From the IMG/VR virus record IMGVR_UViG_3300042564_002819, positions 1 through 64,000 of that record: a stretch of 64,000 nucleotides of DNA; one strand, 5' to 3'. The notes beneath the pieces were generated by a model. It made no database searches. It saw only the letters and a program-made list of their open reading frames with translations, and was not told where the DNA came from. This document shows positions 29,904 to 63,916 of this stretch, piece after piece. Numbering within the stretch: the stretch's first letter is position 1; the number at the start of each line of letters is the position of its first letter. Position numbers and translations under genes: made by a program.

Positions 29904-29947
29904 TATAAAGATAGGACATCCTCGTCCTTGATAACTCGGAGAAAGAA

Positions 29948-37905: not shown

Positions 37906-37915
37906 GGTGAGAAAT

Positions 37916-37947: not shown

Positions 37948-37958
37948 CTATCCACTGG

Positions 37959-38006
37959 TTGACATCTAACGTAAATACTGTTACATTACAGTATAGGCAC
38001 TGAACA
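37959..38006 (+). promoter_or_regulatory. Sigma70-type promoter plus shared 15-bp element, VWA gene
   Basis: TTGACA-17nt-TACATT, then TATAGGCACTGAACA at 37992..38006. Confidence 0.72.
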
Positions 38007-38017
38007 CGAGGTATACT

Positions 38018-45600: not shown

Positions 45601-45614
45601 TCACTTACTAGAAA
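45583..45614. terminator. Hairpin formed by the 3' ends of two convergent genes
   Basis: TTTCTAGTAAGTGA-GTAA-TCACTTACTAGAAA, 14-bp stem with GNRA loop on the + strand. Confidence 0.65.
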
Positions 45615-46182: not shown

Positions 46183-46195
46183 TTTTTCCTTTTTA

Positions 46196-46726: not shown

Positions 46727-46743
46727 AATTTTATAATTTCCTT

Positions 46744-48914: not shown

Positions 48915-48920
48915 ATTTTT

Positions 48921-48948
48921 AGTATAACACCTTTCTCGTATTTGTCAA
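48921..48948 (-). promoter_or_regulatory. Sigma70-type promoter, probably leaderless
   Basis: Minus strand TTGACA-16nt-TATACT; ATG at 48914 is the 7th nt after the -10 box. Confidence 0.65.
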
Positions 48949-48979
48949 TTATGTTTATATTTAACAGATAAGTATTAGC

Positions 48980-49942
48980 ATGATTTATGACGAGCTCACT
49001 CATTTTAAAAACTATGTATTTGTAGATTGGGATATAAGTAGTCGCTGCAATTACAATTGCTATTACTGCACACCCGAGTCACATGACGGAAAAATAAATT
49101 TTCCCGATATAACTGTTGCAAAAAAAGTAGTCGAAAAAATAGAGAAAGAATACAGTTCTTGTAAAGAATTTGCAGTGTATAATCTTTTAGGTGGAGAACC
49201 TACTATATGGAATGATTTGCCAGAATTTAGCAAATATATCAAATCTATTAACAACAAAAATATATTACAATTGTTGACAAACGGCAATAGAACACTAAGA
49301 TGGTGGGAAAATTCTGCACCATACATAGATAAAATTATTGTTAGTGTGCATGTTGCACAAACCGATATTGTTAAATTAGTAGAAAAGTTTAACAAGCTAG
49401 CAGATAAAATCTATATAGACTTTCAATTTGCAATGGATGTTGCAGTGTTTGATCAAGCCGTTGAAGATTATTATTATGCTTATAACAACCTGCATGAAAA
49501 TATTTGTTTATATTCTAAGCCTTTACGGAAAGTGTTAAATAACACCGAATTGATGCCATATACAGAATTGCAAATTGAAACTATTAAAAAGTTACCATCT
49601 AAATGGAGCAGATCTATCGAAATATTCGAAACTCCTATGGTTAAAAAGCTTAACGGAACAGTTGTAGACCCTGCTGTTAATATTGGTAAATTAGTTTTAT
49701 CAAAAGAAAACAACTGGTACGGATGGGCTTGTTGGATTGGCATAGATACTATTACTATTAATCGATACGGAAATGTTAAAATAGGTTCTGGTTGCAACCC
49801 CGACCTAGTGCTCGGTAATATAAATTCTTTAGATTTTAAATTTCCACTGATTCCTGTCAAGTGTAAATATACTACTTGTGGATGTTTTGCTGATATATCT
49901 ACAACAAAAAAATTAAACTACACAGGACCTATGATTCTTTAA
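48980..49942 (+). CDS. Radical SAM protein with C-terminal twitch-like domain
   Basis: CNYNCYYC, LGGEP, TNG; C-terminal CWIG...GC...CKYTTCGC. Confidence 0.88.
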   Translation: MIYDELTHFKNYVFVDWDISSRCNYNCYYCTPESHDGKINFPDITVAKKVVEKIEKEYSSCKEFAVYNLLGGEPTIWNDLPEFSKYIKSINNKNILQLLTNGNRTLRWWENSAPYIDKIIVSVHVAQTDIVKLVEKFNKLADKIYIDFQFAMDVAVFDQAVEDYYYAYNNLHENICLYSKPLRKVLNNTELMPYTELQIETIKKLPSKWSRSIEIFETPMVKKLNGTVVDPAVNIGKLVLSKENNWYGWACWIGIDTITINRYGNVKIGSGCNPDLVLGNINSLDFKFPLIPVKCKYTTCGCFADISTTKKLNYTGPMIL

Positions 49943-51417
49943 TATAGCTTATTAAATTTTTCTAAATGTGCATTTACGATTTTTTCCATATGTGAATTTT
50001 TGCCATATACTTCGTTTATTAAATTCCATATTTCCGATATTCTCTTCTTTCTGACTTCCGGAGAATTGTCTTTATACTTCCAATTAAGAGAACTATTATA
50101 ATATTCTAAATCGTCCTTTATAGTCTCATAAATTATAGAATCCTTATCTAATATCAATGTATTTCCGAATCCAAAATGAATTAGTGGAGTTTGCGAGTAA
50201 TCGCCGACCTTTGTATCAAGATATCCTATCTCTTTTAATTTTCTAATAGTGTCTAATGTTATCTTGTGATCTTCATCTGTTTCAGTTGGATATCCAACTA
50301 TCATTAGCAAACTGTGTTGTATTCTATTTTTTTGAAGTTGTTCAAGGCAAAACCACATATCTTCATCTTTGATCTTTTTACCCATATGAAATCTAACACT
50401 TTCACTAAAGCTTTCTAGTCCAACATCAAGTCCGTGACATCCGCTATCTTTCATTAACTGAAAATCCTCTGCTGTACACTGTGATTGAGGTCGCATAATC
50501 CATTGACTGCTCCAAGTAAAACCAGGGTCTGTTTTTCTATATTCTTTTAATAAATTTAGTAATTCTCTAAATGTTTTCATACTTCCGTTTATTAAGCTAT
50601 CGGTAAAATGAAAATCTGTTCGGTTCCAGAGTTTACGAATTTCTACTATCTCAGTAAAAATACTTTTAGCAGATCTAAATTTATACTTCGGCCAAAGTCG
50701 ATGTATATCGCAAAATGTACAATTTTTAACACACCCTCTACTTCCAGTTATGTAAACAGTTTTTCCGTTTTTAAACCTGTTAGGATATAAAGTCCATTCT
50801 ATATCGCTATAGTCAGGTATTAGTACAGTTGACAAATCTTCAACTTGGTGTGCTTCGTCTGAGTTAATTCCAGGAGCAGACACATTACCTTTTAATAATT
50901 CAACTAAAGAAAATTCTGCATCTCCGTGTATAAAAAAATCAATCAAACCTCTATTGAGCGGATACTGAGCTCGATAACCACGAACGTCGGCGCCGCCCCA
51001 AATAATCTTTGTGTTAGGTAAGTATTTTTTTATTAACATAGAAAAGTAAATTGCAAAAGTTCTACTATACTCAGTTAGCAAACTCATGCCTACAAATCTT
51101 GGTTTTAATTTTTTTAAATCGTTAATAACACTATTTGTCCAATTTTTATATTTTTTAAGAAAAATTTTATGTTCTTTTTCTAAAGAATAATCCCACTCGG
51201 TTACAAATATTTTATCATCATTTTTAAAGAAATACTTTTCTTTTTCCTCATCGGACATTATATTATACAATTGTATATTTAGGTCTATTATTTTGCATGA
51301 AAATCCTTCTGCAGAAAGATGACTTTTAAGAATTGCCGGACCTACTGTAGGAGCATATGGATCTATTTTTGGTATTACTAATATTGCTATATCTACCATT
51401 TTATATATCTTTTCCAT
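49939..51417 (-). CDS. Cobalamin-binding (class B-like) radical SAM protein
   Basis: N-terminal B12-binding-like domain (P.VGPAILKS, IIWGG, GDAE), GSRGCVKNCTFC, FTDSLING, GLES, IVGYPTET. Confidence 0.85.
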   Translation of the reverse strand: MEKIYKMVDIAILVIPKIDPYAPTVGPAILKSHLSAEGFSCKIIDLNIQLYNIMSDEEKEKYFFKNDDKIFVTEWDYSLEKEHKIFLKKYKNWTNSVINDLKKLKPRFVGMSLLTEYSRTFAIYFSMLIKKYLPNTKIIWGGADVRGYRAQYPLNRGLIDFFIHGDAEFSLVELLKGNVSAPGINSDEAHQVEDLSTVLIPDYSDIEWTLYPNRFKNGKTVYITGSRGCVKNCTFCDIHRLWPKYKFRSAKSIFTEIVEIRKLWNRTDFHFTDSLINGSMKTFRELLNLLKEYRKTDPGFTWSSQWIMRPQSQCTAEDFQLMKDSGCHGLDVGLESFSESVRFHMGKKIKDEDMWFCLEQLQKNRIQHSLLMIVGYPTETDEDHKITLDTIRKLKEIGYLDTKVGDYSQTPLIHFGFGNTLILDKDSIIYETIKDDLEYYNSSLNWKYKDNSPEVRKKRISEIWNLINEVYGKNSHMEKIVNAHLEKFNKLY

Positions 51418-52024
51418 TATTTAATAAGCTATGATACCACCCGTTTGGTCGGAGACACCCTCTTCTATTTGTATAGTCTATATTATGTAAATCTAAAAAT
51501 TGTTTTATTTGTAAACATAATTCGTTGTATTTGTCTTGATTATTTGCAAAAAATAAAAATCCCTTGTATAATAATACAGGATATAGTTCTTTGTTATTTA
51601 TGCACACACTAATGTCAACAGTTCGTGTTAGTTCTGCACCGAACCCACATATTGCCATACAAGTTTTTTTAAATTGTTTGTTTAAAAAATATGTTTTGTA
51701 ATCTATGTTATAGGCATCAGTAAATAAAAAATCAAGAGAATTGCTATTAAGATTAGAAGTTCCATCTCCTATGTCTATAGTCAGATTCGGTATTTTTTGT
51801 TTCCACGACTCGTATAAAACTAATAATCTTTCTTTTTCTACTTGTTGCTGAGAATCTTGAAAGTTTTCATAAAAGCTTAACGTGTTAAGAAATTTTGCTT
51901 TATTTAAAAAACAACTGCATATATCTTGCCCATCGTATATTCCAATCATTGCTGAATTTTTAAACAATTCTGATTTGGATTCGATTAAATTTGCTATTAA
52001 ATTATATTTTATTGTTGGTATCAT
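51401..52024 (-). CDS. Hypothetical protein
   Basis: ORF between two radical SAM genes; probable start MIPTIKYN at 52024 (track start 52087). Confidence 0.55.
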   Translation of the reverse strand: MIPTIKYNLIANLIESKSELFKNSAMIGIYDGQDICSCFLNKAKFLNTLSFYENFQDSQQQVEKERLLVLYESWKQKIPNLTIDIGDGTSNLNSNSLDFLFTDAYNIDYKTYFLNKQFKKTCMAICGFGAELTRTVDISVCINNKELYPVLLYKGFLFFANNQDKYNELCLQIKQFLDLHNIDYTNRRGCLRPNGWYHSLLNNGKDI

Positions 52025-52035
52025 TTTAAAGTTTT

Positions 52036-53145
52036 TTATAAATTTACTTTCATGTTTTGTTCTTGTTCTCGTTTTACAATGCCACATGTTTTAATGCACC
52101 TAGGTATTACATTATCATCACCCCAAGATTTTTCTAACTCTTCAGAAAAGAATTTATGCAATAATATTTCTGCCCATGATTTATCTTTCAAAGACAACTC
52201 TGTAAGAGGATATTTTAATTCGGCTTCTGAAAATTTTCTAAAAGATTCGTTGTCATCACTTATATAACAACACGGAAATACTTCTAGTCTGCTATTTACA
52301 TATATCTTTTTTGCTTCTTGATATATGCAAGATATTTTCCATTTGGAGAGTTTTTCAACCGGATTGTAATTTCCTGTGGTAAATTCAGTTACTGATAGTT
52401 GGTTGTTTAGTGATTCCATAATTTCATCATGAGAATGTGTACTTTTAGATCTAACTATAGATTTCATAGTGTCATGACTAGGATGTCGCAAATCTTTTTG
52501 AATAGGAGGTTCGAGATAGTGTGTAATTTCTTTTTTAGAATTCATAACAGGAAAAGGATCAAAGTTATCAAACCGCGGAGTTCGACGTATTCTAAAATCG
52601 TTAACACCAATTTCGGATGCTATATTTTTACATTTTTCAATCTCATGTTCGTTATGCTTAAATGCTAAAAAGTCCCATCGTACTTTTACAGAACCTTTGC
52701 AGCATATTTTCATATGAGAAAGTATTTTATTAATATGAGTATTTTGTCTGTACAAATGGTTAGTTTCTATACCATCAACCCCGAAAGTTATTCTATCATT
52801 TTTATCTAAAATTTCTACTAATTTTTCCCACCAGCTATCTGTTTTGAGACTTCCATTTGTAAATATTTCAATGTTTAGATTTCTGCTTTTAGCTTTATAT
52901 ATTGCTTCAAATAAATATCTCGAAGCAATAGGATCACCGTGTGTTCCGCAAAAATAAACACGTTTTAGATTTGGCAACTCTTCGGAAAATACTTTGTCTA
53001 TGTCCTCTAACGACCACTCCGTTAATCCAAGTCCTGGTCGGTCTACGGATCCAAATATATTTCTATTACACATAGGACAGGATGCGTTACATTTGTTTGT
53101 AATCTCTACATGCATCTCTTCTATTGTGTCAGTTCTTAAAAACAT
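52036..53145 (-). CDS. Radical SAM protein with C-terminal twitch-like domain
   Basis: CNASCPMC, FCGTHGDP, TNG; C-terminal C...FPCC...CIKTC. Confidence 0.88.
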   Translation of the reverse strand: MFLRTDTIEEMHVEITNKCNASCPMCNRNIFGSVDRPGLGLTEWSLEDIDKVFSEELPNLKRVYFCGTHGDPIASRYLFEAIYKAKSRNLNIEIFTNGSLKTDSWWEKLVEILDKNDRITFGVDGIETNHLYRQNTHINKILSHMKICCKGSVKVRWDFLAFKHNEHEIEKCKNIASEIGVNDFRIRRTPRFDNFDPFPVMNSKKEITHYLEPPIQKDLRHPSHDTMKSIVRSKSTHSHDEIMESLNNQLSVTEFTTGNYNPVEKLSKWKISCIYQEAKKIYVNSRLEVFPCCYISDDNESFRKFSEAELKYPLTELSLKDKSWAEILLHKFFSEELEKSWGDDNVIPRCIKTCGIVKREQEQNMKVNL

Positions 53146-53158
53146 GTTTTTTAAATCC

Positions 53159-53180
53159 TATAAATATATGCATGTATTTA
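53159..53180. promoter_or_regulatory. Divergent late-type promoter boxes
   Basis: Exact TATAAATA on + at 53159..53166; TAAATA on - at 53175..53180, between divergent genes. Confidence 0.5.
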
Positions 53181-53208
53181 ACTTTAACAGAGAGATAAAG
53201 ATTTATAT

Positions 53209-54723
53209 ATGACTGATATAGTCTTTCTTACTTTACCAAGATTAGAACTTAGAGCACCGATAACTGCTCCTGCATTGTTAAAATCGATGGTTGAAAAGCA
53301 TGGATATACTGCATTTTGCTATGATTTAAATCTAGATTTGTGGCACAGTATAGATGCATCTACCTACGGACATGTTTGGTTTGACACTGATCTAACATTT
53401 AGATACGAAGACAAGTTTAAAGATTTTTGGAATTCGCATATCTTGCCGTGTGTACCAAGATGGATTGAAACTATTAAATCTAAAAATACATCGTGGGTTG
53501 GGATTACTATTTTTAGTCAAAGAAGTAAGTGGATTAGTATTGCAATATGCGAATTATTACGTAAAGAATTGCCTGAAGTAAAGATTGTAGCAGGTGGTCC
53601 TTTTTGCGAATTTACCGGGCCGCTGCTATATGAAAAAAATCTAGTTGATGCTTATGTAGTTGGCGAAGGCGAACTTGCTATTTTAGATATCCTTAGAGGA
53701 AATTTTTCAAATCCTGGAATAAATGGCAATGATCCTGTACAAATTGAAGATTTAGATACTATTCCTATTCCGGATTATAGTGATTTTCCAATGGAATTAT
53801 ATCCAAAAACTTGGTATGATCCAAGAATAAAAGATCACGACAAATTAGGAACAGAATTTGTATACATCACTGGCAGTAGAGGATGTGTAAGAAAGTGTAC
53901 ATTTTGTGATATACAAAGTGTTTGGCCAAAGTTTAGATTTAGAAGTGGTATTAGTATAGCAACAGAAATGTTAGAACAAAATCAAAAATACGGAAGTAAA
54001 AGATTCTTGTTTACTGACAGCTTGCTAAATGGAAGTGTTAAACAGTTAAAGGATATATGCACAACTCTTATAAAAAATAAAAAATCAGGGCGTATGACTC
54101 ATGTAAATTGGCAGGGACAGTTTATTGCACGTCCAGAACATCAAATGTCAGAAGAAGTTTATTCATTAATGTACGAAGCGGGCCTTAGATTTGTAAGCAT
54201 CGGAGTCGAAAGTGGTAGCGAAAAAGTTCGAAACGATATGAAAAAAATGTTCGACGATTCTGCTATGGACTTTACATTTAACATGTGTGCAAAGTATAAA
54301 ATAGAAATGGCCTGGTTATTGCTTGTGGGGTATCCGACTGAAACAGAGGAAGAGTTTCAAAAAACACTTACTATGCTAGAAAAGTACCAATGGATTAACC
54401 AACAAGGGCTAATACGTAGCATTGCGTTAGGTCCAACGTTAGATATAGTTCCAGGATCGCCACTTTACAAAAATCAAGAAAAATTAGGAATTACTTGGGA
54501 CTCAAACAATCATTGGGTATATAAAGATAATACTCGAGAGATTAGAATTAAGAGATGGCTTAGATTAAAAGAAAAATGCATAGAGCTCGGATATCCAGTC
54601 GTAGAAAAAGCAACAGATCATCTTTTAGCCGAATTAGAAAAGATAACTGCACAAAAAAGTCAAGTAAACCATATTTACGATCATTATAATGAATTATCTG
54701 GAGCAATGGGGCCTAGCGTATAA
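53209..54723 (+). CDS. Cobalamin-binding (class B-like) radical SAM protein
   Basis: APALLKS, IVAGGP, VVGEGE, GSRGCVRKCTFC, FTDSLLNG, GVESGS, LVGYPTET. Confidence 0.87.
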   Translation: MTDIVFLTLPRLELRAPITAPALLKSMVEKHGYTAFCYDLNLDLWHSIDASTYGHVWFDTDLTFRYEDKFKDFWNSHILPCVPRWIETIKSKNTSWVGITIFSQRSKWISIAICELLRKELPEVKIVAGGPFCEFTGPLLYEKNLVDAYVVGEGELAILDILRGNFSNPGINGNDPVQIEDLDTIPIPDYSDFPMELYPKTWYDPRIKDHDKLGTEFVYITGSRGCVRKCTFCDIQSVWPKFRFRSGISIATEMLEQNQKYGSKRFLFTDSLLNGSVKQLKDICTTLIKNKKSGRMTHVNWQGQFIARPEHQMSEEVYSLMYEAGLRFVSIGVESGSEKVRNDMKKMFDDSAMDFTFNMCAKYKIEMAWLLLVGYPTETEEEFQKTLTMLEKYQWINQQGLIRSIALGPTLDIVPGSPLYKNQEKLGITWDSNNHWVYKDNTREIRIKRWLRLKEKCIELGYPVVEKATDHLLAELEKITAQKSQVNHIYDHYNELSGAMGPSV

Positions 54724-54731
54724 GGAAAAAC

Positions 54732-55442
54732 ATGGAAGATTATATTGTACTTAAAAATGTGTTAACTCCCGAAGATATAAAAAATCTAAATGACATAAAA
54801 AGTCTGCTAAAGGACGATCCAGAATCTCATAGACCAAGAGCATCAAACGGAAAAAGACACAATAATGTATATAACATAACTGACAAAACAGTATACACAT
54901 TGGATCAGATTACCAAATGGCTCGATAACTATATGCCTTGGGATAAAGAAATTTATGAATACTGGGGAGTAAATTTTTACGACTTGCAAAATCCGTATGC
55001 ATTACACAGTGACGGAAACGATACTAGACGGGCGTTTTATCAAGGAATTATTCCACTTTCAGTAGAACCGAGCGACAAAGATGCATATACTATAATTTTT
55101 GATCAAACAGCAGATACCAACACTGAATGGATTTCGTCTGTGTATAATAAACCGGATGATTACGAACCGTTTTATAATAAGGGTATTCGAGATCCTAGTT
55201 ACTTCGGAGGCTGGTCAGACGAATATAAAATAGACGACGAAGTAGGATACAAACACTGGGGTAAAAAATGGAATACCACATTTAAAGAGGCCTACAAAGG
55301 TTTTAGCATAAAATATGAATATAAGTGGGAAGTTGGAGACATTTTCTTTTTTGATAGTAAGTTTACTCACTGTGCAACTGAATTAGCAGAAAAAGAAATA
55401 AATCAAAAAACAGGCTTGCTTTTTTGTTTAAATAGGAAATAA
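54732..55442 (+). CDS. 2OG-Fe(II) oxygenase-like protein
   Basis: YALHSD (HxD), WEVGDIFFFDSKFTHCA. Confidence 0.65.
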   Translation: MEDYIVLKNVLTPEDIKNLNDIKSLLKDDPESHRPRASNGKRHNNVYNITDKTVYTLDQITKWLDNYMPWDKEIYEYWGVNFYDLQNPYALHSDGNDTRRAFYQGIIPLSVEPSDKDAYTIIFDQTADTNTEWISSVYNKPDDYEPFYNKGIRDPSYFGGWSDEYKIDDEVGYKHWGKKWNTTFKEAYKGFSIKYEYKWEVGDIFFFDSKFTHCATELAEKEINQKTGLLFCLNRK

Positions 55443-55443
55443 A

Positions 55444-56250
55444 ATGCGTGTAGAAGAACTTAACAGATACTTTTCAACTGCTGTACCGTTTGCAAGTGTT
55501 GAAGATGTCGAAATAAAACAATATTATTATACAGACTTAGATAAAATAGAAATTGCTGTTCCAAGAAACGGTGCACCAATGGGAATGTTTTTGTCAGGCG
55601 GCCCTGATAGTGCCCTTACAGCCTACTTGTTAGTAAAAACAATTAAAGAATTTGGATTTAACAACCCTGTTTATCCTATAACTACTGAATTTCTTGCAAG
55701 GCCTTACAATATAAAATACGCTTGGGGAGTGTTAAGAAAAATAGAAGAACTATTAGATTTTAAATTTGAACAGCATCTTATTTTTCCTATGCCTAACCAT
55801 GCACTACCAATTAGTGACGAAGATAAAAAAGTAATCATGTCATTTAATATACAAGAATACCATGATAGATACAATCTAAGTTGTATTGTAAATGGACTAA
55901 CTGCAAATCCACCTATATCTGAAGTCGGAGATACAAAATACGGCGATAGTTCTAAAGAGCGTGACGAAGCAGAAGTTATTTTAAAAAAATTAAAAAGCAA
56001 GCGTGTGCAATATCCATTCTTATTTTCTAATAAAAGAGTAGTTTCATATTTTTATAATCATTTTGACTTGCTCGAAACCCTTTTCCCTATCACTCGTTCG
56101 TGTGAAGCTGAGATGCACGAAACCGAATATTTTACAAAAGATTGCTTTCAAGTAAGACGAGAAGAAAGATATTGCTGGTGGTGCAGAGAAAGACAATGGG
56201 GATTTGAAAAATACAGACCTGACGATTTTGTAAATAGGTTTAAAGGATAA
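55444..56250 (+). CDS. QueC-like PP-loop ATPase, paralog 1
   Basis: FLSGGPDSAL; C-terminal TRSCE...C....YCWWCRERQWG. Confidence 0.7.
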   Translation: MRVEELNRYFSTAVPFASVEDVEIKQYYYTDLDKIEIAVPRNGAPMGMFLSGGPDSALTAYLLVKTIKEFGFNNPVYPITTEFLARPYNIKYAWGVLRKIEELLDFKFEQHLIFPMPNHALPISDEDKKVIMSFNIQEYHDRYNLSCIVNGLTANPPISEVGDTKYGDSSKERDEAEVILKKLKSKRVQYPFLFSNKRVVSYFYNHFDLLETLFPITRSCEAEMHETEYFTKDCFQVRREERYCWWCRERQWGFEKYRPDDFVNRFKG

Positions 56251-56258
56251 GATTAATC

Positions 56259-57014
56259 ATGAAACCAAAACACCCAAATGTCGAATTTGAGGAAATGTGG
56301 GAAGTATCTGATGGCAGTGCAACTATAATTCCTATGAATAGTAAATGGAAAGCAATAGGCGTTCAAGTATCAGGAGGTTTAGACAGTGCTGTTCTCCTGT
56401 ACTTAACTGTCAAAACAATACAAAAACATAATCTAGATGTAAAAGTTGTTCCTATTAGTTTAGAAATTTACAATAAAGCAAAGAATTTAGAGAGTTCTAG
56501 AGCAGTAATACAAAAAGTTAAAGACATTACAGGATTTAAAAACTGGGGAGAATCGGTAGAAGCTATTGGAAAACCTTCTCAAGCAGAATTTATCGGAAAA
56601 AACAGTTTTTTTAGTTCTGTTATTAATACACTATTTTTAAAAAAAGCAATAGATTTTGAAATTAACGGAGTGACTAAAAACCCTCCTTTAGAAGTGTGTA
56701 AAGATTTTAAATTTAACGAATACAGAGAATTTGCAAGAGACAATCCGCGAACTATATACAACGGAATGCGAAATGCTAGTCCACACGCTTTTGTAGATAA
56801 AAAAGGAATAGTAGAACATTATATCAATCATAATCTAGTTGATGAAATAATTCCGCTAACGCTCTCTTGTGATGAAAAATTAGATATAATAATAAAAAAT
56901 GATTGGCCAATTCCTTGTGGCACCTGTTGGTGGTGCAGAGAAAGAAGATGGGGCCTCGAATCTCACAATCTTGATTATCAAAAATATAGTCCGTTAAATG
57001 CATATACCAAGTAA
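56259..57014 (+). CDS. QueC-like PP-loop ATPase, paralog 2
   Basis: QVSGGLDSAVL; C-terminal TLSCD...CGTCWWCRERRWG, like the QueC zinc site (T.SC...CG.C..C..R). Confidence 0.72.
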   Translation: MKPKHPNVEFEEMWEVSDGSATIIPMNSKWKAIGVQVSGGLDSAVLLYLTVKTIQKHNLDVKVVPISLEIYNKAKNLESSRAVIQKVKDITGFKNWGESVEAIGKPSQAEFIGKNSFFSSVINTLFLKKAIDFEINGVTKNPPLEVCKDFKFNEYREFARDNPRTIYNGMRNASPHAFVDKKGIVEHYINHNLVDEIIPLTLSCDEKLDIIIKNDWPIPCGTCWWCRERRWGLESHNLDYQKYSPLNAYTK

Positions 57015-58182
57015 AACTTTTTGCAGCATGGCTTGGAACCATCAGTTTATCGATCCTACAGGACGAGTTAAGCCGTGTTGCAGATTTGCAGAAAAATTTA
57101 GACCAGTAGAAAACAATCTTAACAATAAAACATTGAGTGAAGTGTTTTATGGCGAGTGGATGACTGATATTCGACAAAAAATGCTAGCCGGAGACACTGT
57201 GCCGGGCTGCATTAGATGCTATCAAGAAGAAGCAGCCGGTAAAAAAAGTCTGCGAGAACGTTACCACGAAAACAAAGATCTTCCTATAGACGAGCTAGTT
57301 AATCTAACAAATCCAACTATTCGTTGGATAGAGCTTGCTATTAGCAACGATTGTAATCTTGCATGTAGGATGTGCGACAGTCGTTATGCGTGGAAATGGT
57401 TTAAAGAAGAAAAAGAGATGTACGGGTCCACTCTTAACACTGTTGAACACAGCAAAAGTGACATATCAAACATCTTTCCATTTATAAACGATCTAGTACA
57501 TATAAAATTTACAGGCGGAGAACCATTATTAACAAAAGATCAATGGCTATTAGTTGATAAAATGCTTGAGGAAAGAGACTGTAGTGACATTTTATTAAAT
57601 TATTCAACTAATTGTACAATAATGCCAAAAGACAGTTGGGTTGAAAAATGGAAAAAATTTAAACAAGTTGAATTTGCATTAAGTTTTGATAGTGCAAATC
57701 CTGCAGAATCTGAATATATACGTTGGCCTGCAAAATTTGAAACAACCGAAGCAGTTACAAAAAGATTTTTAGAACTTAAAAAAGAACATGGATTTCATGT
57801 ATTTTTAAGAAGTACTATAAGTTTATTGAATGTTTGGTACATGCCAGAAAGTATGCAATGGTGGCACGACAACGATCCTTCGTCAGTTAAAATAATGAAT
57901 CCTACACACTTGACATATCCCGAAAACTTATCTGTTACAGTATTACCACAGCATATTAAAGAAAGAATCACTTTAAAATTTGTTGATTATCAAAAAAATT
58001 GTAATATTAAAAAGATAAATGAAAGTTTAGAATACATCAAAAATTACATGAATAGCAAGGATGACAGTCATTTACTTCCGAGTTTAAAATCATATATAAC
58101 TCAGACCGATGCTTATAGAAATCAAGATTTTTTTAAAAACTATCCTCAATTTTCAGATATATTTGAACAATTGTGTGTTTGA
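56998..58182 (+). CDS. Radical SAM protein with N-terminal SPASM/twitch-like domain
   Basis: FCSMAW...KPCC...CIRC..E..GKKSLR; CNLACRMC; TGGEP. Confidence 0.88.
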   Translation: MHIPSKTFCSMAWNHQFIDPTGRVKPCCRFAEKFRPVENNLNNKTLSEVFYGEWMTDIRQKMLAGDTVPGCIRCYQEEAAGKKSLRERYHENKDLPIDELVNLTNPTIRWIELAISNDCNLACRMCDSRYAWKWFKEEKEMYGSTLNTVEHSKSDISNIFPFINDLVHIKFTGGEPLLTKDQWLLVDKMLEERDCSDILLNYSTNCTIMPKDSWVEKWKKFKQVEFALSFDSANPAESEYIRWPAKFETTEAVTKRFLELKKEHGFHVFLRSTISLLNVWYMPESMQWWHDNDPSSVKIMNPTHLTYPENLSVTVLPQHIKERITLKFVDYQKNCNIKKINESLEYIKNYMNSKDDSHLLPSLKSYITQTDAYRNQDFFKNYPQFSDIFEQLCV

Positions 58183-59255
58183 TATTGTTTATACATATAA
58201 GAATCTTTTTTGCAATTTATTATGCAACTAGTACAAACATTATCAGATTTCCATGTTTCTTTGATCTTTTTAAAAATTTTAACTTGATCTAATATCCTAT
58301 CTATCGGATTTAATATTACATTGTTAAAAAAATAATCCTTTCTTATAGAATCTTTAAAAATTTCAACTATACTATCATATAGTATATTTTGTTTATAGTC
58401 TTGTTCGAATCCTATTGCAGTATGACAACACGGCCAAAGTCTCTGATCGTACGATAAAAACACACTGTTTTCATTTAAAGCATTACAAGATATTTTTCCT
58501 TTTCTCACTATCTTAGGACTTTCTAAACTATTTGCATACCCAACATCGGCACCATAATATTTGTGCCATTTTTTATCAAAGTGTTTAGTATCTCGTACAA
58601 TGTCGTTATTTTTAATATTATATGGTTCTAAAAAGTATGAATGTTCTAAATTTTTATCTACTACTGATAATTTTTTTTCTTTAAATCTTGTTGATTCTCT
58701 TGTAGCAAATTCGGTAAACTTGAGGTCAAATGCTAGTTTTTTGCATTCATCTATTTGATGTGCATTGTGTTTAAAAAGAGTCATCTCCCATCTAGCTATA
58801 CCACCAGATTCAATGTATGCTTTTGCATTTTGTATAACTCGCGAAAAAGAAGTATTTCTTCTATACAAATGATGGGTATCTTCTAATCCATCAATACCAA
58901 ATCTTACTTCAACATTTGGCTGTTCGCCTAACCATTTCCAAAATTCTAATGATTGTGCTCCGCCGTTTGTATGTATATTGATTTTAAAATTTAATTCAAC
59001 AAATACTTCTATTATCGATTTTGGATTAGTGTGCATTACAATATCTCCAAAATTTCCATTTATTAGTACCGTTTCGATGTCTTTAAAGAAAGGATGAGCT
59101 AATGTATTTTTTAAGTCAACTGCATTCCACTCTGAAATATTTAAGCGTGGATAAGTTTCTAGACTAGTTTCAAACGTCCTAGGACATTGCGGACATCTTG
59201 CATTACACGCACTAGTCGGTTCAAAATGAAGCATAGTTATAGGTGATGAATACAT
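58146..59255 (-). CDS. Radical SAM protein with C-terminal twitch-like domain
   Basis: CNARCPQC, INGNFGD, TNG; C-terminal C...WPCC...CIINC. Confidence 0.88.
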   Translation of the reverse strand: MYSSPITMLHFEPTSACNARCPQCPRTFETSLETYPRLNISEWNAVDLKNTLAHPFFKDIETVLINGNFGDIVMHTNPKSIIEVFVELNFKINIHTNGGAQSLEFWKWLGEQPNVEVRFGIDGLEDTHHLYRRNTSFSRVIQNAKAYIESGGIARWEMTLFKHNAHQIDECKKLAFDLKFTEFATRESTRFKEKKLSVVDKNLEHSYFLEPYNIKNNDIVRDTKHFDKKWHKYYGADVGYANSLESPKIVRKGKISCNALNENSVFLSYDQRLWPCCHTAIGFEQDYKQNILYDSIVEIFKDSIRKDYFFNNVILNPIDRILDQVKIFKKIKETWKSDNVCTSCIINCKKDSYMYKQYQTHNCSNISEN

Positions 59256-59257
59256 GT

Positions 59258-60481
59258 TTACTCCTCGTAATATTCGTAGTATTTTAATTTTTCGTTAATA
59301 TAGTCTTGTAATAATGGGTTTACATCTTTTAGTGACAGTTTTCTTACTTTGCTAAAATACTCAATTGCTTCACTAAATTGTTTAATTCTACGTAATGTTA
59401 TATCTGAGCCGATTGTATTATATACTACTTGCAAATTTTCAATAATTTCTTCGTAGTTATCAAATCGATTTCTAAATTTATTTACAATTTTTATAGATCT
59501 TTTAACATACTTTTTAAATCTGTCGTCAAGAAATCCTACTGTTATACCCGGAGTGTAAACAATATTGGCTTTTACATCAATTTTAATTTTGTATTTCATA
59601 GTAATATAAATTAAAAAATTAAAATAGTCAGGCAACATTGTTATAGATATTGGATTTATTGCCATGTTTGTACTCATTAAATATCCTGTATTTGCCCACT
59701 TTTTAAAATTTTCAACAAATCTATCGTAAGAGCATCCATATCTAATATATTCAAAATTTTGTCCAACACTTTCAGCACTGATAGATATTAAGTAATTTAA
59801 ATTTGGATATTTTTGTTTGTAAAAACTCATTTTTTCTAAACACTTATCCATTATCTTAGGAGGAGTATTTGCATTTGTTTGTATAGTTAATAAGAGATAT
59901 GTATTCGGATCTGTATTTTTATAAAAACTCTCAATGGTCAAATCCAACAGTTCTTTTTTGTTTATACTCATTAGTAAAGGCTCTCCTCCTAAGAGTATTA
60001 TTTCGTAATAGTCATCTTCTTTTTTATTTTTAGCAACTTCGGAAATATAATTAAAAACATAGTCAGCATATTTTTTAGGAGTATGTTTATTTTTTATTTC
60101 TCTGTCAGCCCACGTTGGCGGCTCAACACTTGTATTTAATATTTCTTGTTCCCATTTACTACTGTAAATTCTACTACAATAGACACAAGCAGAATCACAG
60201 GTATTGTCAAAGTAAAGTTCAATTTGATATTTGTTCGGTCGTTTTTCGTAATGTTCGTTGCCGTGCATTCTCCACGATTTATTTTTAGAAAACTCAGCTT
60301 TCCAACAAGTATTACAAGAATTATTTTTTATACCATTTTGCAAATCTGTTTTTATTTTTTCAAGGTCGTCTGTAAACATTTCTGCACCAGGATGCATTTT
60401 ACAACAAAGACATACTGTATTTTCTAACGGTCTGAATACTATTTCATGAGAACTTCTTTTACATCCAAGATTATCTTGCAT
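59258..60481 (-). CDS. Radical SAM protein with N-terminal SPASM/twitch-like domain
   Basis: GCKR...CLCC...CNTCWKAE; CDSACVYC; LGGEP. Confidence 0.85.
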   Translation of the reverse strand: MQDNLGCKRSSHEIVFRPLENTVCLCCKMHPGAEMFTDDLEKIKTDLQNGIKNNSCNTCWKAEFSKNKSWRMHGNEHYEKRPNKYQIELYFDNTCDSACVYCSRIYSSKWEQEILNTSVEPPTWADREIKNKHTPKKYADYVFNYISEVAKNKKEDDYYEIILLGGEPLLMSINKKELLDLTIESFYKNTDPNTYLLLTIQTNANTPPKIMDKCLEKMSFYKQKYPNLNYLISISAESVGQNFEYIRYGCSYDRFVENFKKWANTGYLMSTNMAINPISITMLPDYFNFLIYITMKYKIKIDVKANIVYTPGITVGFLDDRFKKYVKRSIKIVNKFRNRFDNYEEIIENLQVVYNTIGSDITLRRIKQFSEAIEYFSKVRKLSLKDVNPLLQDYINEKLKYYEYYEE

Positions 60482-61691
60482 TTTGTTTTACCTTAGTTGC
60501 CCAATTTGCTAATTCTGGATTATAATCATAAATGTTAAATCCTCTTAGAGAATTAATATAATCGATCCATCGCAATGCATGAGAATTGTCTTCATCAGTT
60601 GCCGAATATTTTAAAGTCTTTAATCTTTCTGTTCTTTCAAAAATTATAGGATTTTTTAAATATTCTGTATTGTTAAAAAAATCATTTACTAATCTATCTA
60701 TGTCGTTTTGTGGAACGATACTATATGCAGAATACTTTGGAAGAAAAACATAGTAATAAGCAAATACATCTACTAATCCTGTTTTTAACAACTCGTTTGC
60801 TGATTCCTTAAGAGTCCATAATGTATAGAGTGAAACTGTACTACTTGCTATAACTCTTTTTCCTGTTCTTCTTAAATATGTTTCCATATTTTCAAGTGTT
60901 TGTTCATAAGGAGTACTACGTATCCATTCGTAGATTTTTCCTGTGCCGTCAAGACTTGCAGTAACTAATAATTCAACATTGGGATTTTTATTTAACTTTT
61001 CTAAAATGTCCCAAATTTCTTCTGTAATTACTGCCCAATTAGAAACAATTAAAATACGCATTTCGTATTTTTTATCTACAATTTCTTTTAAAACTCTTAT
61101 ATTTCTTGGATCTGCAAAGGGCTCGCCCCCTTTAATAAGTAAAAACTTAATCGACGGTAACACTTCTAAAATCTTTTTCATGTCGTCGTCGGTGGCCTGG
61201 AAAGCCTTTGTATGTAAGTTTGATAATCCAGAATTTTCTCTAAATTCTAAACCTTCTTTTTTTGCACGTTTATCTAGTCCTATCCATTTACTGCTATAGA
61301 TACTTCCGCACATAGCACAGCTTTGATTACATAAGTTACTTGGAGTATACTCTAGTGATAAAATTTGCTTTCTCGAAGAATTAAAATTTTCATCCGACCA
61401 AGGAAGATTAACATAATGATCGTTGTCTATATGGGCAGGAATTCCATTTTCTCTATTGTCTTTGCAAGCTACACATGCACTTGGCCATTCACCTTTTTTA
61501 AATTTATTACGAATGCCATTTATTATGTCATTGTTGTAATAGTCAGTTAATGATGCTACCTCGCTAATATATGACCCGTGTTTTTTGCCAACTGTGCATA
61601 ATTTTAAATCTCCCAATGGACCAATGTTAAGTTGGCTCCACGGGGCTTTACACATCATCGGTCTACGAGATTGATATTCTTTATCAGACAT
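60471..61691 (-). CDS. Radical SAM protein with N-terminal SPASM/twitch-like domain
   Basis: MCKAPW...KLC...CVAC; CNQSCAMC; KGGEP; probable start MSDKEY at 61691. Confidence 0.87.
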   Translation of the reverse strand: MSDKEYQSRRPMMCKAPWSQLNIGPLGDLKLCTVGKKHGSYISEVASLTDYYNNDIINGIRNKFKKGEWPSACVACKDNRENGIPAHIDNDHYVNLPWSDENFNSSRKQILSLEYTPSNLCNQSCAMCGSIYSSKWIGLDKRAKKEGLEFRENSGLSNLHTKAFQATDDDMKKILEVLPSIKFLLIKGGEPFADPRNIRVLKEIVDKKYEMRILIVSNWAVITEEIWDILEKLNKNPNVELLVTASLDGTGKIYEWIRSTPYEQTLENMETYLRRTGKRVIASSTVSLYTLWTLKESANELLKTGLVDVFAYYYVFLPKYSAYSIVPQNDIDRLVNDFFNNTEYLKNPIIFERTERLKTLKYSATDEDNSHALRWIDYINSLRGFNIYDYNPELANWATKVKQNAR

Positions 61692-62565
61692 TATATCCCC
61701 TTGCGTCAAATCTATTATCAACTAGCATTCTTAAAGGAGTTCTAACACTTACAAAAGTTCCATTATGAGATGCAATATTTATAGAATCAGTTTCTTCTAA
61801 TTTAAAATCTTTGCAAACTTTTGTATATTCTTTATTATAATTTTTCCACCAAAAGTCCGAGCCAAACCTGTCTATCATATTACACCCAATCCACATGTCG
61901 CTTACGTTATTATATCCAAAGTTATTCATAATATTTATAGGACCATCGATTTGTTCTTTACTGTATCGAACACCAATTCTTTGAGATCCCATCGAAAAGG
62001 CTTTACTTAGGCTAATTGAAAACGTCTTGATAGCAGAATGTGACAAATCTATATCAATGTTTTTACACTGTCCTAGCCATGCTGCATCTATGTGAACGTC
62101 GATAGAGTTTTTGTAACAAAAGTCTAAGAGTCGATCTATGTCGGGTATATTCCCTGCTGTTTTAACAGAAGGATAAGAAATAACTAGAACTGATCCTGAC
62201 GGTATTGCAGAATAATGTGTTACTTTTAAAATTTTTGGATTTAATCTCCAATGATATGCATACTCGCCTTCGAATATTACTAACTTATTACTGTATCTGT
62301 AATGCAGTTCGTCTATTTGCTGTGAAACACCTAATATAGCATCAGTAAATTTAAAAGACTCTAAATTTTTAATATTATTTAATTTAGAATTTTTAATCCA
62401 AGCTGTAACTTTTTCTATAAAGTATTTTGTATATTGATTGCTATCTGTTGGATATTCTTTCATATCTAGAGAATCTCGAAACCCAATAATTTTACCAACT
62501 AACATAGGAGGAATTCTAGATGTTAAAAACTTTTCTACACTTAAGTTATTATAATCCATATACAT
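61684..62565 (-). CDS. PLP-dependent enzyme (aminotransferase/decarboxylase fold type I)
   Basis: VHIDAAW and SISLSKAF (PLP lysine), RIG. Confidence 0.75.
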   Translation of the reverse strand: MYMDYNNLSVEKFLTSRIPPMLVGKIIGFRDSLDMKEYPTDSNQYTKYFIEKVTAWIKNSKLNNIKNLESFKFTDAILGVSQQIDELHYRYSNKLVIFEGEYAYHWRLNPKILKVTHYSAIPSGSVLVISYPSVKTAGNIPDIDRLLDFCYKNSIDVHIDAAWLGQCKNIDIDLSHSAIKTFSISLSKAFSMGSQRIGVRYSKEQIDGPINIMNNFGYNNVSDMWIGCNMIDRFGSDFWWKNYNKEYTKVCKDFKLEETDSINIASHNGTFVSVRTPLRMLVDNRFDARGYNV

Positions 62566-63916
62566 CGCCTTTTAACAATGCCCATGTTTTTTCGCATACA
62601 TCTTTTAGTTTTTCTTTTCTTGACTTATCTAATGTATTTGTATAATACCAAAACTTTTCTAAATCTTTAGAATGATCTTCTGAGTTCATAAATTTTATAT
62701 ATTGATCTAATATCTTACAAAAATACTTAAAGTTTTCCGATTTTTCTTTTTCGGTTAAATCTAGCAACGAAATCTCTGCTTTAGCTTCAATCTTTTTTTG
62801 TTCAAAGTAATTTTCTATCCACTGCTTACTTTCTTTTGGAAATATTTGAATATTTAAGAACTTTGGATTATGTAAAGGATGCGGACTTATTACCGGCTTG
62901 TGTTGCACCTCAACATTAATTCTTTTAAATTTTTGTTTGATTTTCCAAAGCATCATATCAGGCAAGTGAACTAGATTATATGCTTGTATAGTAGCAGCCC
63001 ACCATATTTTAAAATCTCCTTCAGCAGCGTCTAATTTTCGCATATTTTCTTCTATCTTGTGCCATTTGCTAGGATTTCTTATATAATCGTTTATTGGTCC
63101 TACAGCATCAACACTCATTCCAATTTGTATACGTTCAAAATGCTTCCAAATATTCCAAGCACGTTCTGGAATATTAGTAATATTTGTATTGTATTCTATC
63201 ACAATAGATTTAGATCTTCCGGCATCTATGCACTTTTGTAAAAACTCGTAATGTTGGTCTATTAATAAAGGTTCCCCTCCAACGATGTATAATCGTTCTA
63301 TTGTAGGAATTTCTTGTTCCATTTCCTTCCAAAAAGCAGGCTTTTCGTACCAAGAATAGATATCAACTTCGGGTTTATGCTTTCCGTTTGCTGTTTTTAT
63401 TAATTTTACAGTTTGCCCGCTATCTTTATATTGATTTCCCCAAAGCAATACGTTGTCATCGTACCACTGACTGCTATCTGTAGGCCCACACATTCTACAT
63501 TTTAAATTGCAAAGATTTCCAAAACGAAGATCCATGTATTTTATAGGATTTTCTTCTAAATCAATTGATCCATCTTGCTTCGTTTTTGATATGGCATCTT
63601 CTTTATTAATTACATGAGCCCATATATCTCTTTCCCAACTAGCTCTACTTTCCATTCCTGATTCTGCTTCACGTTTACATCTAATGCATGATTCGTGATA
63701 TTCATTATTTAACATAGCTAATCTAACTTCTTTCATTAGATTGCTGTTTCTAAATCCGTGTATAGTTTCAGTTGATAGGTTGTAATTCGATCCTGTTTCT
63801 GTTTTTACTAATCCCTGATTAATACTAACATTTGCATTACAACATATTCTTACATCGCCGTTATTTCTTACATTTAAACTCATCCACGGCAGTGGACAAA
63901 ATGCGTTATTTTCCAT
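62549..63916 (-). CDS. Radical SAM protein with N-terminal SPASM/twitch-like domain
   Basis: FCPLPW...RICC...CIRC..E..G.ESR; CNLKCRMC; VGGEP. Confidence 0.9.
   Translation of the reverse strand: MENNAFCPLPWMSLNVRNNGDVRICCNANVSINQGLVKTETGSNYNLSTETIHGFRNSNLMKEVRLAMLNNEYHESCIRCKREAESGMESRASWERDIWAHVINKEDAISKTKQDGSIDLEENPIKYMDLRFGNLCNLKCRMCGPTDSSQWYDDNVLLWGNQYKDSGQTVKLIKTANGKHKPEVDIYSWYEKPAFWKEMEQEIPTIERLYIVGGEPLLIDQHYEFLQKCIDAGRSKSIVIEYNTNITNIPERAWNIWKHFERIQIGMSVDAVGPINDYIRNPSKWHKIEENMRKLDAAEGDFKIWWAATIQAYNLVHLPDMMLWKIKQKFKRINVEVQHKPVISPHPLHNPKFLNIQIFPKESKQWIENYFEQKKIEAKAEISLLDLTEKEKSENFKYFCKILDQYIKFMNSEDHSKDLEKFWYYTNTLDKSRKEKLKDVCEKTWALLKGDVYGL

Follow-up and report, generated by a model that had tools for sequence, protein, structure and literature searches.

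The region studied here raises the question of whether two adjacent genes of a freshwater jumbo phage, which encode proteins resembling the queuosine enzyme QueC, supply a missing step of deazaguanine synthesis or instead serve the radical SAM (rSAM) genes that surround them. An earlier note based on the sequence alone had proposed both possibilities. We analysed a window of 64,000 nucleotides (positions 1 to 64,000 of IMG/VR record IMGVR_UViG_3300042564_002819) together with the rest of the 330-kb phage genome, using genetic code 11 only. Our results indicate that the two proteins have a QueC-like predicted fold but lack the QueC substrate pocket, and that they belong to a large family, not described in the papers we searched, that sits inside arrays of 10-20 radical SAM enzymes of unknown product.

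Two PP-loop paralogues in a radical SAM island

The earlier note had described tandem QueC-like PP-loop ATPases with a CWWCRER.WG signature inside a radical SAM island, and this observation is correct. Its coordinates match two intact ORFs exactly, encoding D1 (P0001) and D2 (P0002), which are paralogues with 29% identity over 234 residues (BLASTP, E 5e-26). Both carry an SGGxDS PP-loop and a C-terminal four-Cys motif ending CWWCRERxWG. The signature is not due to chance; among 193 family proteins 184 have SGGxDS, 168 SC[ED], 166 CxxCxxC and 163 CW[WF]C. The location inside the island was also confirmed, as the genome has 16 PF04055 hits, most of them between 46.7 and 74 kb, and a third paralogue with a CWFC variant (D3) lies just past the window end. 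The coordinates are collected in Table 1.

Table 1. Features of the island and of the deazaguanine-related genes in the phage genome.
Position	Strand	Feature	Supporting observations
29061-29843		260-aa ORF next to FolE	No hit in Pfam, NCBIfam, PHROGs, PADLOC, the PDB or cultured phages
29948-30634		FolE
30894-31793		Phage-type QueE	phrog_2076 at 2.5e-51; 34-40% identity to QueE of phages Moby, BUCT-ZZ01 and D479
31860-32954		SAM synthetase
43005-44276	+	PP423, a fourth, unrelated PP-loop protein at the island's left edge	Weak ATP_bind_3, NAD_synthase and QueC N-terminal hits; weak TilS/MnmA-like hits
45601-51417	.	Left part of the island: Asp/Arg hydroxylase-like oxygenase, short SDR-like protein, four radical SAM genes and a second B12-rSAM
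52036-53145	-	A-family radical SAM, divergently transcribed
53209-54723	+	C, B12-binding radical SAM, first gene of the five-gene plus-strand run	PF02310 and PF04055; best NCBIfam matches are C- and P-methyltransferases, below cut-off
54732-55442	+	ox236, probable Fe(II)/2OG oxygenase (HxD...H)	HSD and THC motifs seen by eye in the translation; no Pfam hit; recurs with the island
55444-56250	+	D1, PP-loop ATP pyrophosphatase of predicted QueC-like fold, 'WW' clade, 268 aa	No Pfam hit above cut-off; own clade with support 100
55594-55611	+	D1 PP-loop SGGPDS, residues 51-56	Read from the translation
56092-56202	+	D1 Cys4 motif TRSCE-x13-C-x9-CWWCRERQWG, residues 217-253 (Cys 220, 234, 244, 247)	Second Cys displaced relative to D2
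56259-57014	+	D2, PP-loop ATP pyrophosphatase of predicted QueC-like fold, 'WW' clade, 251 aa	PF06508 22.7 bits against a cut-off of 22, C-terminal part only
56370-56387	+	D2 PP-loop SGGLDS, residues 38-43	Invariant in the alignment
56859-56954	+	D2 Cys4 motif TLSCD-x15-CGTCWWCRERRWG, residues 201-232 (Cys 204, 220, 223, 226)	Aligns to the E. coli QueC zinc motif
56998-58182	+	B1, radical SAM with N-terminal twitch domain	NF033640 303.9 bits against a cut-off of 170
58146-59255	-	A-family radical SAM, convergent with B1
59258-61721	-	Two further N-twitch radical SAM genes (59258-60481 and 60471-61721)	NF033640 132.6 bits (below the 170 cut-off) and 194.9 bits
61684-62565	-	u293, short PLP aminotransferase-like protein (invariant SLSK)	Profile search of the PDB: class I/II aminotransferases at E 2e-3 and 6e-3; in 17 of 80 viral loci
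62549-63916	-	N-twitch radical SAM; the next genes, past the window end, are an A-family rSAM and D3	NF033640 368 bits
64977-65630 (genome)	-	D3, third paralogue, CWFC variant

The five genes from C to B1 are tightly packed, being separated by 8, 1 and 8 nt before D2 and B1 overlap by 17 nt. The D2-then-B1 order is kept in seven viral loci (L009, L021, L023, L024, L026, L028 and L029). A complex prediction for D2 with B1 gave a score of 0.00 and no verdict, and counts neither for nor against binding. No RNA run contains the locus and expression reads were not examined.

To determine how widespread the family is, we searched cultured and uncultured sequences. Searches by tblastn of D1 and D2 against 50,697 cultured phage records gave no match, and a central family member hit only gp134 of Ralstonia phage RsoM2USA, which has no rSAM gene beside it. 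The family is nevertheless large, with 1,441 clusters at 50% identity. Of 80 IMG/VR loci, 57 have island-type rSAM genes within 10 kb and 53 have three or more, all informative metagenome contexts are rSAM arrays, and 13 of 18 large records that carry the family have 10 or more rSAM hits. In 23 of the 80 viral loci, however, a family member was found without detectable rSAM genes, for example beside the large terminase or beside a clamp loader, a DNA C5-methylase and an oxygenase-HD fusion. The family's chemistry therefore need not depend on rSAM partners and could act on nucleic acid. Tandem copies recur, with five D domains in locus L019 and two or three in L102, L103, L108 and L116. D1, D2 and D3 fall in separate clades in a quick tree, which was used in place of a more careful search; the QueC outgroups sit on branches of 8-10 substitutions per site, so that their placement is unusable. 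The same island also occurs, patchily, in chromosomes of Bdellovibrionia-labelled MAGs. Full-text literature searches found no description of phage or Bdellovibrionota rSAM arrays with QueC-like genes, and the 2026 survey of PF06508 lists no such cluster.

Relation to QueC and to deazaguanine genes

The interpretation given in the earlier note is only partly supported. 'QueC-like' holds for the fold and for the zinc motif. Sequence searches of the PDB with D2 alone found nothing and its profile found only P-loop matches to NadE at E 0.04, with no QueC. The AF2 model of D2 has a pLDDT of 93.9 and shows a Rossmann-like core with the SGGxDS loop after strand 1, as in the PP-loop ATP pyrophosphatase superfamily (adenine nucleotide alpha-hydrolase fold). 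It matches 29 PP-loop enzymes at Z>=8, led by Cap9 (Z 12.1) and QueC (Z 11.9), and Foldseek agrees. The lead of these two over TilS and NcsA (Z 11.4) is within the tie margin. The C-terminal 61 columns align to E. coli QueC, with TLSCD..CGxCWWCxER against TLTCY..CGHCAACNLR.

Membership of QueC itself fails. TIGR00364 scores 15.1 bits against a cut-off of 150.3 for D2 and gives no hit for D1, while PF06508 passes its cut-off narrowly and only in the C-terminal piece of D2 and gives no hit for D1. The substrate-pocket features of QueC that are essential by mutagenesis (PMC13082051), namely YxQxHxxE, VPxRN, YPDC and Tyr189, were found in 0, 0, 0 and 4 of 193 family proteins, whereas E. coli QueC, included as a positive control, has all of them. 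The zinc motif C(x)8CxxCxxC as written was likewise found in 0 of 193 although a homologous variant exists, D2 having C-x15-C-x2-C-x2-C and D1 C-x13-C-x9-C-x2-C.

The proposal that the proteins supply a QueC step missing from an upstream dpdA cluster is not supported. The genome has FolE and a true phage-type QueE about 24 kb upstream, but PF01702 (TGT/DpdA) gives no match in it at E<=1, PF01242 (QueD) gives none, no canonical QueC was detected, and a T4-like phage DpdA and its QueC-like protein find nothing by tblastn. The 260-aa ORF next to FolE was considered as a possible divergent DpdA, without any hit in its favour; the possibility stays open because it was not folded. The earlier note had suggested comparing co-occurrence with dpdA against co-occurrence with radical SAM arrays. 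In contrast to the frequent rSAM linkage above, none of the 80 viral loci has FolE, QueE or MetK within 10 kb of a family member, and no TGT or canonical QueC was found in 18 related viral records. FolE is present in 11 of 18 other records that carry the family, but three near-complete ones (G008, G009 and G013) lack it. The alternative proposal of the note, that the proteins form amides or nitriles on the island product, fits all the evidence but is untested.

Possible roles of the family

Most likely D1 and D2 are ATP-dependent adenylating ligases or amidotransferases that tailor the unknown product of the island, an explanation that we consider about as likely as not to be correct. In this view they are two anciently diverged members of a large, mostly phage-borne clade of the PP-loop superfamily that keeps the QueC scaffold, with the pyrophosphate loop and a C-terminal Cys4 metal site, probably zinc, but whose substrate pocket has been replaced. 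Each enzyme would bind ATP at the PP-loop and adenylate a carboxylate or carbonyl oxygen of an intermediate made by the neighbouring radical SAM, B12-radical SAM, Fe/2OG oxygenase and aminotransferase-like proteins. AMP would then be displaced by ammonia or an amine to give an amide, amidine or nitrile, a sulfur nucleophile being less likely. The paralogues D1, D2 and D3 would handle different steps or substrates of a modular, cassette-like pathway whose product we think is a small molecule, possibly nucleotide-linked. A hint in this direction comes from family protein P0187, which fuses an NTP_transf_3 nucleotidyltransferase to D and sits next to a HAD hydrolase, an oxygenase and an rSAM. The analysis itself establishes the fold, the motifs, the family size, the gene neighbourhoods and the lack of QueC pocket motifs; the adenylation chemistry, the amide-forming outcome and the nature of the substrate are our inference, and no biochemical data exist for any family member. 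ATP to AMP + PPi turnover was not measured and is inferred from the family only. Four conserved Cys in an Fe-S-rich island could also bind a cluster rather than zinc, and no precursor, carrier or product gene was identified. We looked for a sugar or phosphonate pathway in this genome and found no NeuB and no PEP mutase, and the only NTP_transf_3 gene is at 201.6 kb. A fold search with B1 to infer the substrate class was uninformative since SkfB (Z 9.5), BlsE (9.4), viperin (9.4) and MoaA tie at Z 8.5-9.5.

Two other roles are unlikely, to a similar degree. The proteins could be protein or peptide ligases in the manner of Cap9 and QatC, or part of a RiPP-like pathway, attaching a carboxylate to an amine of a protein or peptide that the radical SAM enzymes also modify. 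Cap9 is the top structural match, and the best sub-threshold NCBIfam hits of the rSAM neighbours include SPASM/twitch peptide maturases and a RiPP C-methyltransferase; the exposed Trp pair could be a docking surface, which is an inference. However there is no room for a precursor-peptide gene between the island's genes, no RRE-type domain was detected, no CD-NTase, QatB-like or TGT partner is present, and the rSAM fold matches do not separate peptide from nucleotide or sugar enzymes. Alternatively they could be sulfur- or nucleic-acid-directed enzymes of the TtuA/NcsA/TtcA/LarE/DndC type, adenylating a base or carboxylate for thiolation of phage tRNA or DNA with the four Cys holding an Fe-S cluster. 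Foldseek ranks TtuA chains 2-6, there are weak LarE and PAPS-reductase family hits, the phage carries 33 tRNA genes, and in smaller phages the family sits beside the terminase or DNA-replication and methylase genes. Against this, the Cys4 spacing and flanking residues align to the QueC zinc site and not to the TtuA catalytic Cys triad. The only candidate sulfur donor, u293, matches aminotransferases rather than cysteine desulfurases (its DndA/SspA hits were 13-15 bits), and TGT-type and Dnd/Ssp partners are missing.

Less likely still, one or more paralogues could be the functional QueC equivalent for the phage's FolE/QueE pathway, activating 7-carboxy-7-deazaguanine (CDG) to make preQ0 or ADG, or a CDG-amide conjugate that the island then elaborates. 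The presence of FolE and QueE without a canonical QueC, and Cap9 and QueC as the nearest solved folds, favour this reading. Complementation of a queC mutant and conversion of CDG to preQ0 were not assayed, but the residues that bind the deazaguanine in QueC and Cap9 (YxQxHxxE, the RN of VPxRN, YPDC/YxDC) are absent from the family (PMC13082051; 10.1101/2025.04.06.647259), in addition to the missing QueD and TGT/DpdA and the lack of linkage to FolE/QueE. In our explanation the proteins do not make preQ0 and are not the missing QueC of a DNA deazaguanine system. That one tandem copy is catalytically dead and only a scaffold or specificity subunit in a pseudo-enzyme heterodimer is very unlikely, for although QueC and Cap9 are dimers (10.1101/2025.04.06.647259) and D1 has a displaced second Cys and no family hit in Pfam, PHROGs or PADLOC, both copies keep SGGxDS and four Cys, D2 occurs without D1 in loci L009 and L011, and D1 has its own conserved clade.

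A broader possibility, which we can only put forward tentatively, is that the WW-type QueC-fold ligases mark an unrecognised, cassette-built biosynthetic system of 10-20 radical SAM enzymes with B12-rSAM, Fe/2OG oxygenases, an aminotransferase and one to five PP-loop ligases, shared between aquatic jumbo phages and a few Bdellovibrionia chromosomes. It would make a heavily tailored metabolite, glycan unit or nucleobase of a kind not yet described for phages, with the PP-loop paralogues forming its amide or amidine bonds. QueC-fold enzymes were recently shown to have been repurposed from nucleobase synthesis to protein modification in anti-phage defence, and this family would be a further repurposing, larger by cluster count and carried mainly by the phages themselves. 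It is also a convenient marker for phage genomes that carry up to 20 radical SAM genes plus their own SAM synthetase, an investment whose product is unknown. Identifying that product would open new radical SAM and PP-loop chemistry and show what jumbo phages gain from it, and the Bdellovibrionia-labelled chromosomes give a possible cellular system to study and a host lead.

Comparison with known PP-loop enzymes

The sulfur-transfer enzymes TtuA, NcsA and LarE match structurally at Z 10-11.4, with top Foldseek E-values, but the alignment covers only the core fold, and those enzymes are longer and use a catalytic Fe-S cluster or a sacrificial Cys at other positions. Sugar N-amidotransferases of the WbpG type (PF06508 cluster 5 in PMC13082051) are PP-loop enzymes that tailor a biosynthetic intermediate inside a multi-enzyme glycan cluster, which is the kind of role proposed here. 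This comparison is by analogy only and was not tested; their motif order and size differ (300-400 aa; CxxC(x)6CxC before the P-loop) and no direct sequence match was seen. QatC of QatABCD is a QueC-family scaffold with a remodelled pocket and a variant zinc motif with long spacing, C(x)19CGxCxxRR (PMC13082051), to which there is a weak C-terminal hit (PADLOC E 6e-3). It is however about 400 aa long with extensions and its own motifs, NF041925 scores 16 bits against a cut-off of 280, and no QatA, QatB or QatD neighbours are present.

QueC, the 7-cyano-7-deazaguanine synthase (PF06508 cluster 1, TIGR00364; PDB 3BL5, 2PG3), shares a size of about 220-270 aa, the single-domain PP-loop Rossmann-like fold (Z 11.9 to 3BL5), the N-terminal SGGxDS and a C-terminal Cys4 metal motif with CxxCxxC. 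Beyond the missing pocket and linkage to queD/queE, the phage proteins differ in having no Tyr after the first zinc Cys, a Cys spacing of x15 or x13/x9 rather than x8, a Trp-Trp (or Trp-Phe) pair between the last two Cys and a family-specific NPP motif. Cap9, the QueC-like protein deazaguanylase of type IV CBASS (PDB 9NTO), is the best structural match (rmsd 3.1 over 162 residues), and the PADLOC Cap9-type QueC model aligns over the whole of D2 (E 1.4e-5). Of its zinc motif CE(x)6CxxCxxCxD (PMC13082051) only the C-E/D start is shared. Cap9 keeps the QueC deazaguanine pocket (Y/FxQx5E, RN, H(x)4YxDC), which this family lacks, [YF]xQx5E being found in 7 and YxDC in 0 of 193 proteins. It stands in an operon with a CD-NTase and the TGT-like Cap10, neither of which is present here where the neighbours are rSAM genes, and the carrier is mostly phages rather than a bacterial defence island. 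Cap9 is nonetheless a precedent for this scaffold joining a carboxylate to an amine other than ammonia.

Organization of the D1-D2 locus and its genomic setting

Two complete ORFs, D1 and D2, lie exactly where the earlier note had placed a tandem pair of QueC-like PP-loop ATPases, and that observation holds, including their position inside a radical SAM (rSAM) island. Both proteins begin with a PP-loop (SGGPDS in D1 and SGGLDS in D2) and both end with T-x-S-C-[ED]...C...CWWCRERxWG. They are real paralogues with 29% identity over 234 residues (E 5e-26). The two genes belong to a tight run of five, in which a B12-radical SAM gene and a probable Fe/2OG oxygenase gene precede D1 and an N-terminal-twitch rSAM gene follows D2. 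The gaps in that run are 8, 1 and 8 nt, followed by a 17-nt overlap, and both D genes have AGGA-type ribosome sites, whereas no promoter or terminator signal exceeds chance inside the run.

The window is the first 64 kb of a 330,024-bp IMG/VR virus record that is 93% complete by CheckV. Its DNA polymerase is 43-50% identical to those of jumbo myoviruses such as Atu_ph07 and Phosso. ARAGORN run on the whole genome found 33 tRNA genes in three clusters, none of them in the window. The locus is present in lake and river water metagenome runs from 22 studies, none of which is RNA. The genome has 16 radical SAM (PF04055) hits, most of them between 46.7 and 74 kb, so that the island runs past the window end. 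All-against-all BLAST sorts the island into paralogue families: family A, rSAM proteins of 326-369 aa (4 copies); family B, NF033640 N-twitch rSAM proteins (7 copies); family C, B12-rSAM proteins (2 copies); family E, rSAM proteins (2 copies); and family D, the PP-loop proteins D1, D2 and D3 (3 copies). NF033640 is a little-studied family in which the SPASM/twitch-like domain precedes the rSAM core. On the minus strand the order A-B-D recurs. D3, a CWFC variant just past the window end, is flanked by an N-twitch rSAM upstream and an A-family rSAM downstream, each with a 4-nt overlap.

The same genome encodes a full-length S-adenosylmethionine synthetase with all three MetK domains (E 1e-31 to 1e-56), which is plausibly there to supply SAM for the island. 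At the left edge of the island a PP-loop protein unrelated to D, with weak TilS/MnmA/NadE-type hits, is followed by a saccharopine-dehydrogenase-family protein; this PP-loop protein recurs in two further loci of our collection, L029 and L087, and the dehydrogenase also in L087. Directly before the island lies a protein with an Mtd_N (major tropism determinant N-terminal) domain and a Chlorovirus glycoprotein repeat, probably a fibre or receptor-binding protein. A glycosyltransferase (group 1, below the Pfam cut-off) and an NAD-dependent sugar epimerase/dehydratase are found about 18 kb before the island.

Coordinates of the genes and loci discussed in the text (window positions unless another record is named)
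Feature	Position	Strand	Size
Glycosyltransferase and sugar epimerase/dehydratase	24799-26825	+	
FolE (29948-30634), phage-type QueE (30894-31793) and unassigned ORF (29061-29843; 260 aa), with a phosphoribosyltransferase and a HIT-family protein	27887-31793	+	
S-adenosylmethionine synthetase	31860-32954	+	
MoxR-type AAA ATPase and DUF2201 pair	36823-39304	+	
Mtd_N domain protein	40835-42280	+	
PP-loop protein unrelated to D, then saccharopine-dehydrogenase-family protein	43005-45600	+	423 aa (PP-loop protein)
Seven NF033640 N-twitch rSAM genes	46744-63916 and genome to about 74 kb		
B12-radical SAM	53209-54723		
Probable Fe/2OG oxygenase	54732-55442		
D1	55444-56250	+	268 aa
D2	56259-57014	+	251 aa
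N-terminal-twitch rSAM	56998-58182		
D3	genome (G000) 64977-65630	-	217 aa
tRNA genes	genome (G000) 222344-329801		
Homologue in Ralstonia phage RsoM2USA (gp134)	L017:14962-15621		
Nucleotidyltransferase-D fusion (P0187)	L018:1540-2853		
Five D-family domains in a row	L019:10001-13722		
rSAM + D cassette islands in MAGs labelled Bdellovibrionia	L102-L116 (GTDB genomes); G020:C34:146000-217400; G019:C15:639000-665000		

Relationship to QueC and to a deazapurine pathway

An AlphaFold2 model of D2, built on 28 homologues, has a pLDDT of 93.9 and a predicted fold that is QueC-like. Its best solved matches are Cap9 (9NTO_B, Z 12.1, rmsd 3.1, 162 residues) and B. subtilis QueC (3BL5, Z 11.9), although TilS and NcsA follow at Z 11.4, which is within the tie margin. 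A profile-profile comparison with E. coli QueC aligns only the C-terminal 61 columns, with SPHAF.DKK...TLSCD...CGxCWWCxER set against TPLMWIDKA...TLTCY...CGHCAACNLR in QueC. The Cys4 site is therefore homologous to the QueC zinc site.

Membership of QueC itself nevertheless fails. TIGR00364 scores 15 bits against a cut-off of 150 and QatC scores 16 against 280, while PF06508 is borderline for D2 (22.7 against 22) and absent for D1. A 2026 survey of PF06508 defined the QueC pocket motifs YxQxHxxE, VPxRN, YPDC and Tyr189 and showed by mutagenesis that Y35, R99, Y131 and Y189 are essential (PMC13082051), and the Cap9 structure shows that the equivalent residues stack on and hydrogen-bond the deazaguanine (10.1101/2025.04.06.647259). 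In 193 family proteins these motifs occur 0, 0, 0 and 4 times, respectively, whereas E. coli QueC, used as a control, has all of them. The family has its own signature instead, with NPP in 155 of the 193 proteins, SC[ED] in 168 and CW[WF]C in 163.

The earlier note proposed that the pair could supply the QueC step missing from a dpdA cluster about 25 kb upstream. About 24 kb upstream we found FolE, a phage-type QueE, the SAM synthetase, a phosphoribosyltransferase and a HIT protein, but profiles of TGT/DpdA (PF01702) and QueD (PF01242) find nothing at E<=1 in the whole genome and no canonical QueC is detectable in it. One ORF next to FolE remains unassigned, and what this partial deazapurine set makes is unexplained. 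Phage Moby has a canonical FolE - QueC-like - DpdA - QueE cluster. By tblastn its QueC-like protein and DpdA find only noise in the present genome, while its FolE and QueE find their orthologues. Among 18 large viral records that carry the family none has a TGT or a canonical QueC. FolE is present in 11 of those 18 and is missing from three near-complete records, at 99%, 91% and 98% completeness. The dpdA premise is therefore not confirmed and the rescue hypothesis is unlikely. The interpretation in the earlier note is partly supported, as QueC-like holds for the fold and the zinc motif.

Distribution and neighbourhoods of the D family

A profile of D1, D2 and D3 finds 1,441 clusters at 50% identity with E<=1e-3, of which 960 are at E<=1e-10. 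The nearest ESM Atlas clusters, by features and by structure, are all labelled viral, and IMG/VR holds 209 matching stretches. Of 50,697 cultured phage records only one, Ralstonia phage RsoM2USA, has a homologue (gp134; locus L017). It is annotated hypothetical, with no rSAM gene beside it and a poly(A)-polymerase/CCA-adding-type gene two genes away, and could be an experimentally tractable entry point. D1, D2 and D3 fall in separate supported clades of the family tree, so the tandem pair is old and not a recent duplication. In syntenic loci D2 is 39-46% identical while its downstream rSAM is 72-84% identical.

The earlier note had suggested checking co-occurrence with dpdA versus with rSAM arrays. 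HMMs of this island's gene families find rSAM families A, B, C or E within 10 kb in 57 of the 80 best viral loci, and 53 of those loci have three or more, whereas FolE, QueE or MetK occur within 10 kb of a family member in 0 of the 80. Two or more D copies are found in 20 of the 80 loci. Independent metagenome contigs show the same arrays. Locus L019 has five D domains in a row, the first two fused into one 498-aa protein (P0051). DUF2201, a VWA-like metallopeptidase that in the present genome is paired with a MoxR-type AAA ATPase, recurs within 10 kb of D-family genes in 9 of 80 viral loci and MoxR in 3 of 80.

In 23 of the 80 loci no rSAM was detected. There the gene sits beside a T4-type large terminase, or beside a clamp loader, a C5 DNA methylase and a 2OG-oxygenase/HD fusion, or beside an FkbM methyltransferase. 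One member, P0187, has a MobA-like nucleotidyltransferase domain fused N-terminally to a D-family domain and is flanked by a HAD hydrolase, an Asp/Arg-hydroxylase-type oxygenase and an rSAM, which hints at a nucleotide-activated small substrate. The 293-aa unknown protein of the island is a short aminotransferase-like PLP protein.

To see if the family also occurs in cells we scanned GTDB species genomes with patterns that were biased towards D2-like sequences. The scan found 15 loci with 32-50% identity to D2 (14 of them 42-50%). Fourteen of the loci are in MAGs labelled Bdellovibrionia, Bdellovibrionales, Pseudobdellovibrionaceae or Bdellovibrio, and one MAG is labelled only 'bacterium'. Thirteen of the 15 loci sit inside the same rSAM cassettes, while locus L107 shows a single rSAM gene and locus L109 none. 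One island lies on a 349.5-kb contig that also carries ribosomal protein S8 and another lies on a 936-kb contig; these islands are therefore chromosomal. The distribution is patchy, as only 5 of 301 sampled Bdellovibrionota genomes have the family. The presence of the island in these chromosomes is a possible host or gene-exchange lead for the phage.

Possible role of the family and its relation to known enzymes

Our data show an intact PP-loop and Cys4 site on a QueC-type scaffold, a replaced pocket and, in most loci, an obligate-looking company of oxidative, radical and aminating tailoring enzymes. The reaction itself we infer from the chemistry common to PP-loop enzymes, namely an ATP-dependent adenylation of a carboxylate or carbonyl followed by attack of ammonia or an amine; the other role suggested in the earlier note was the formation of amides or nitriles on the island product. 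The paralogues probably serve different steps or substrates. The role of the Trp pair is unknown, and it might be a docking or stacking surface next to the metal site. The product is likewise unknown, although we lean towards a small, possibly nucleotide-linked molecule rather than a peptide, a protein or preQ0.

Full-text literature searches and the dedicated PF06508 survey (PMC13082051) show no description of this clade or of such arrays in phages or Bdellovibrionota. From a comparative point of view the D proteins are a variation on an already known kind of enzyme, keeping the QueC-type scaffold with a replaced pocket, and they are embedded in what may be a new kind of system.
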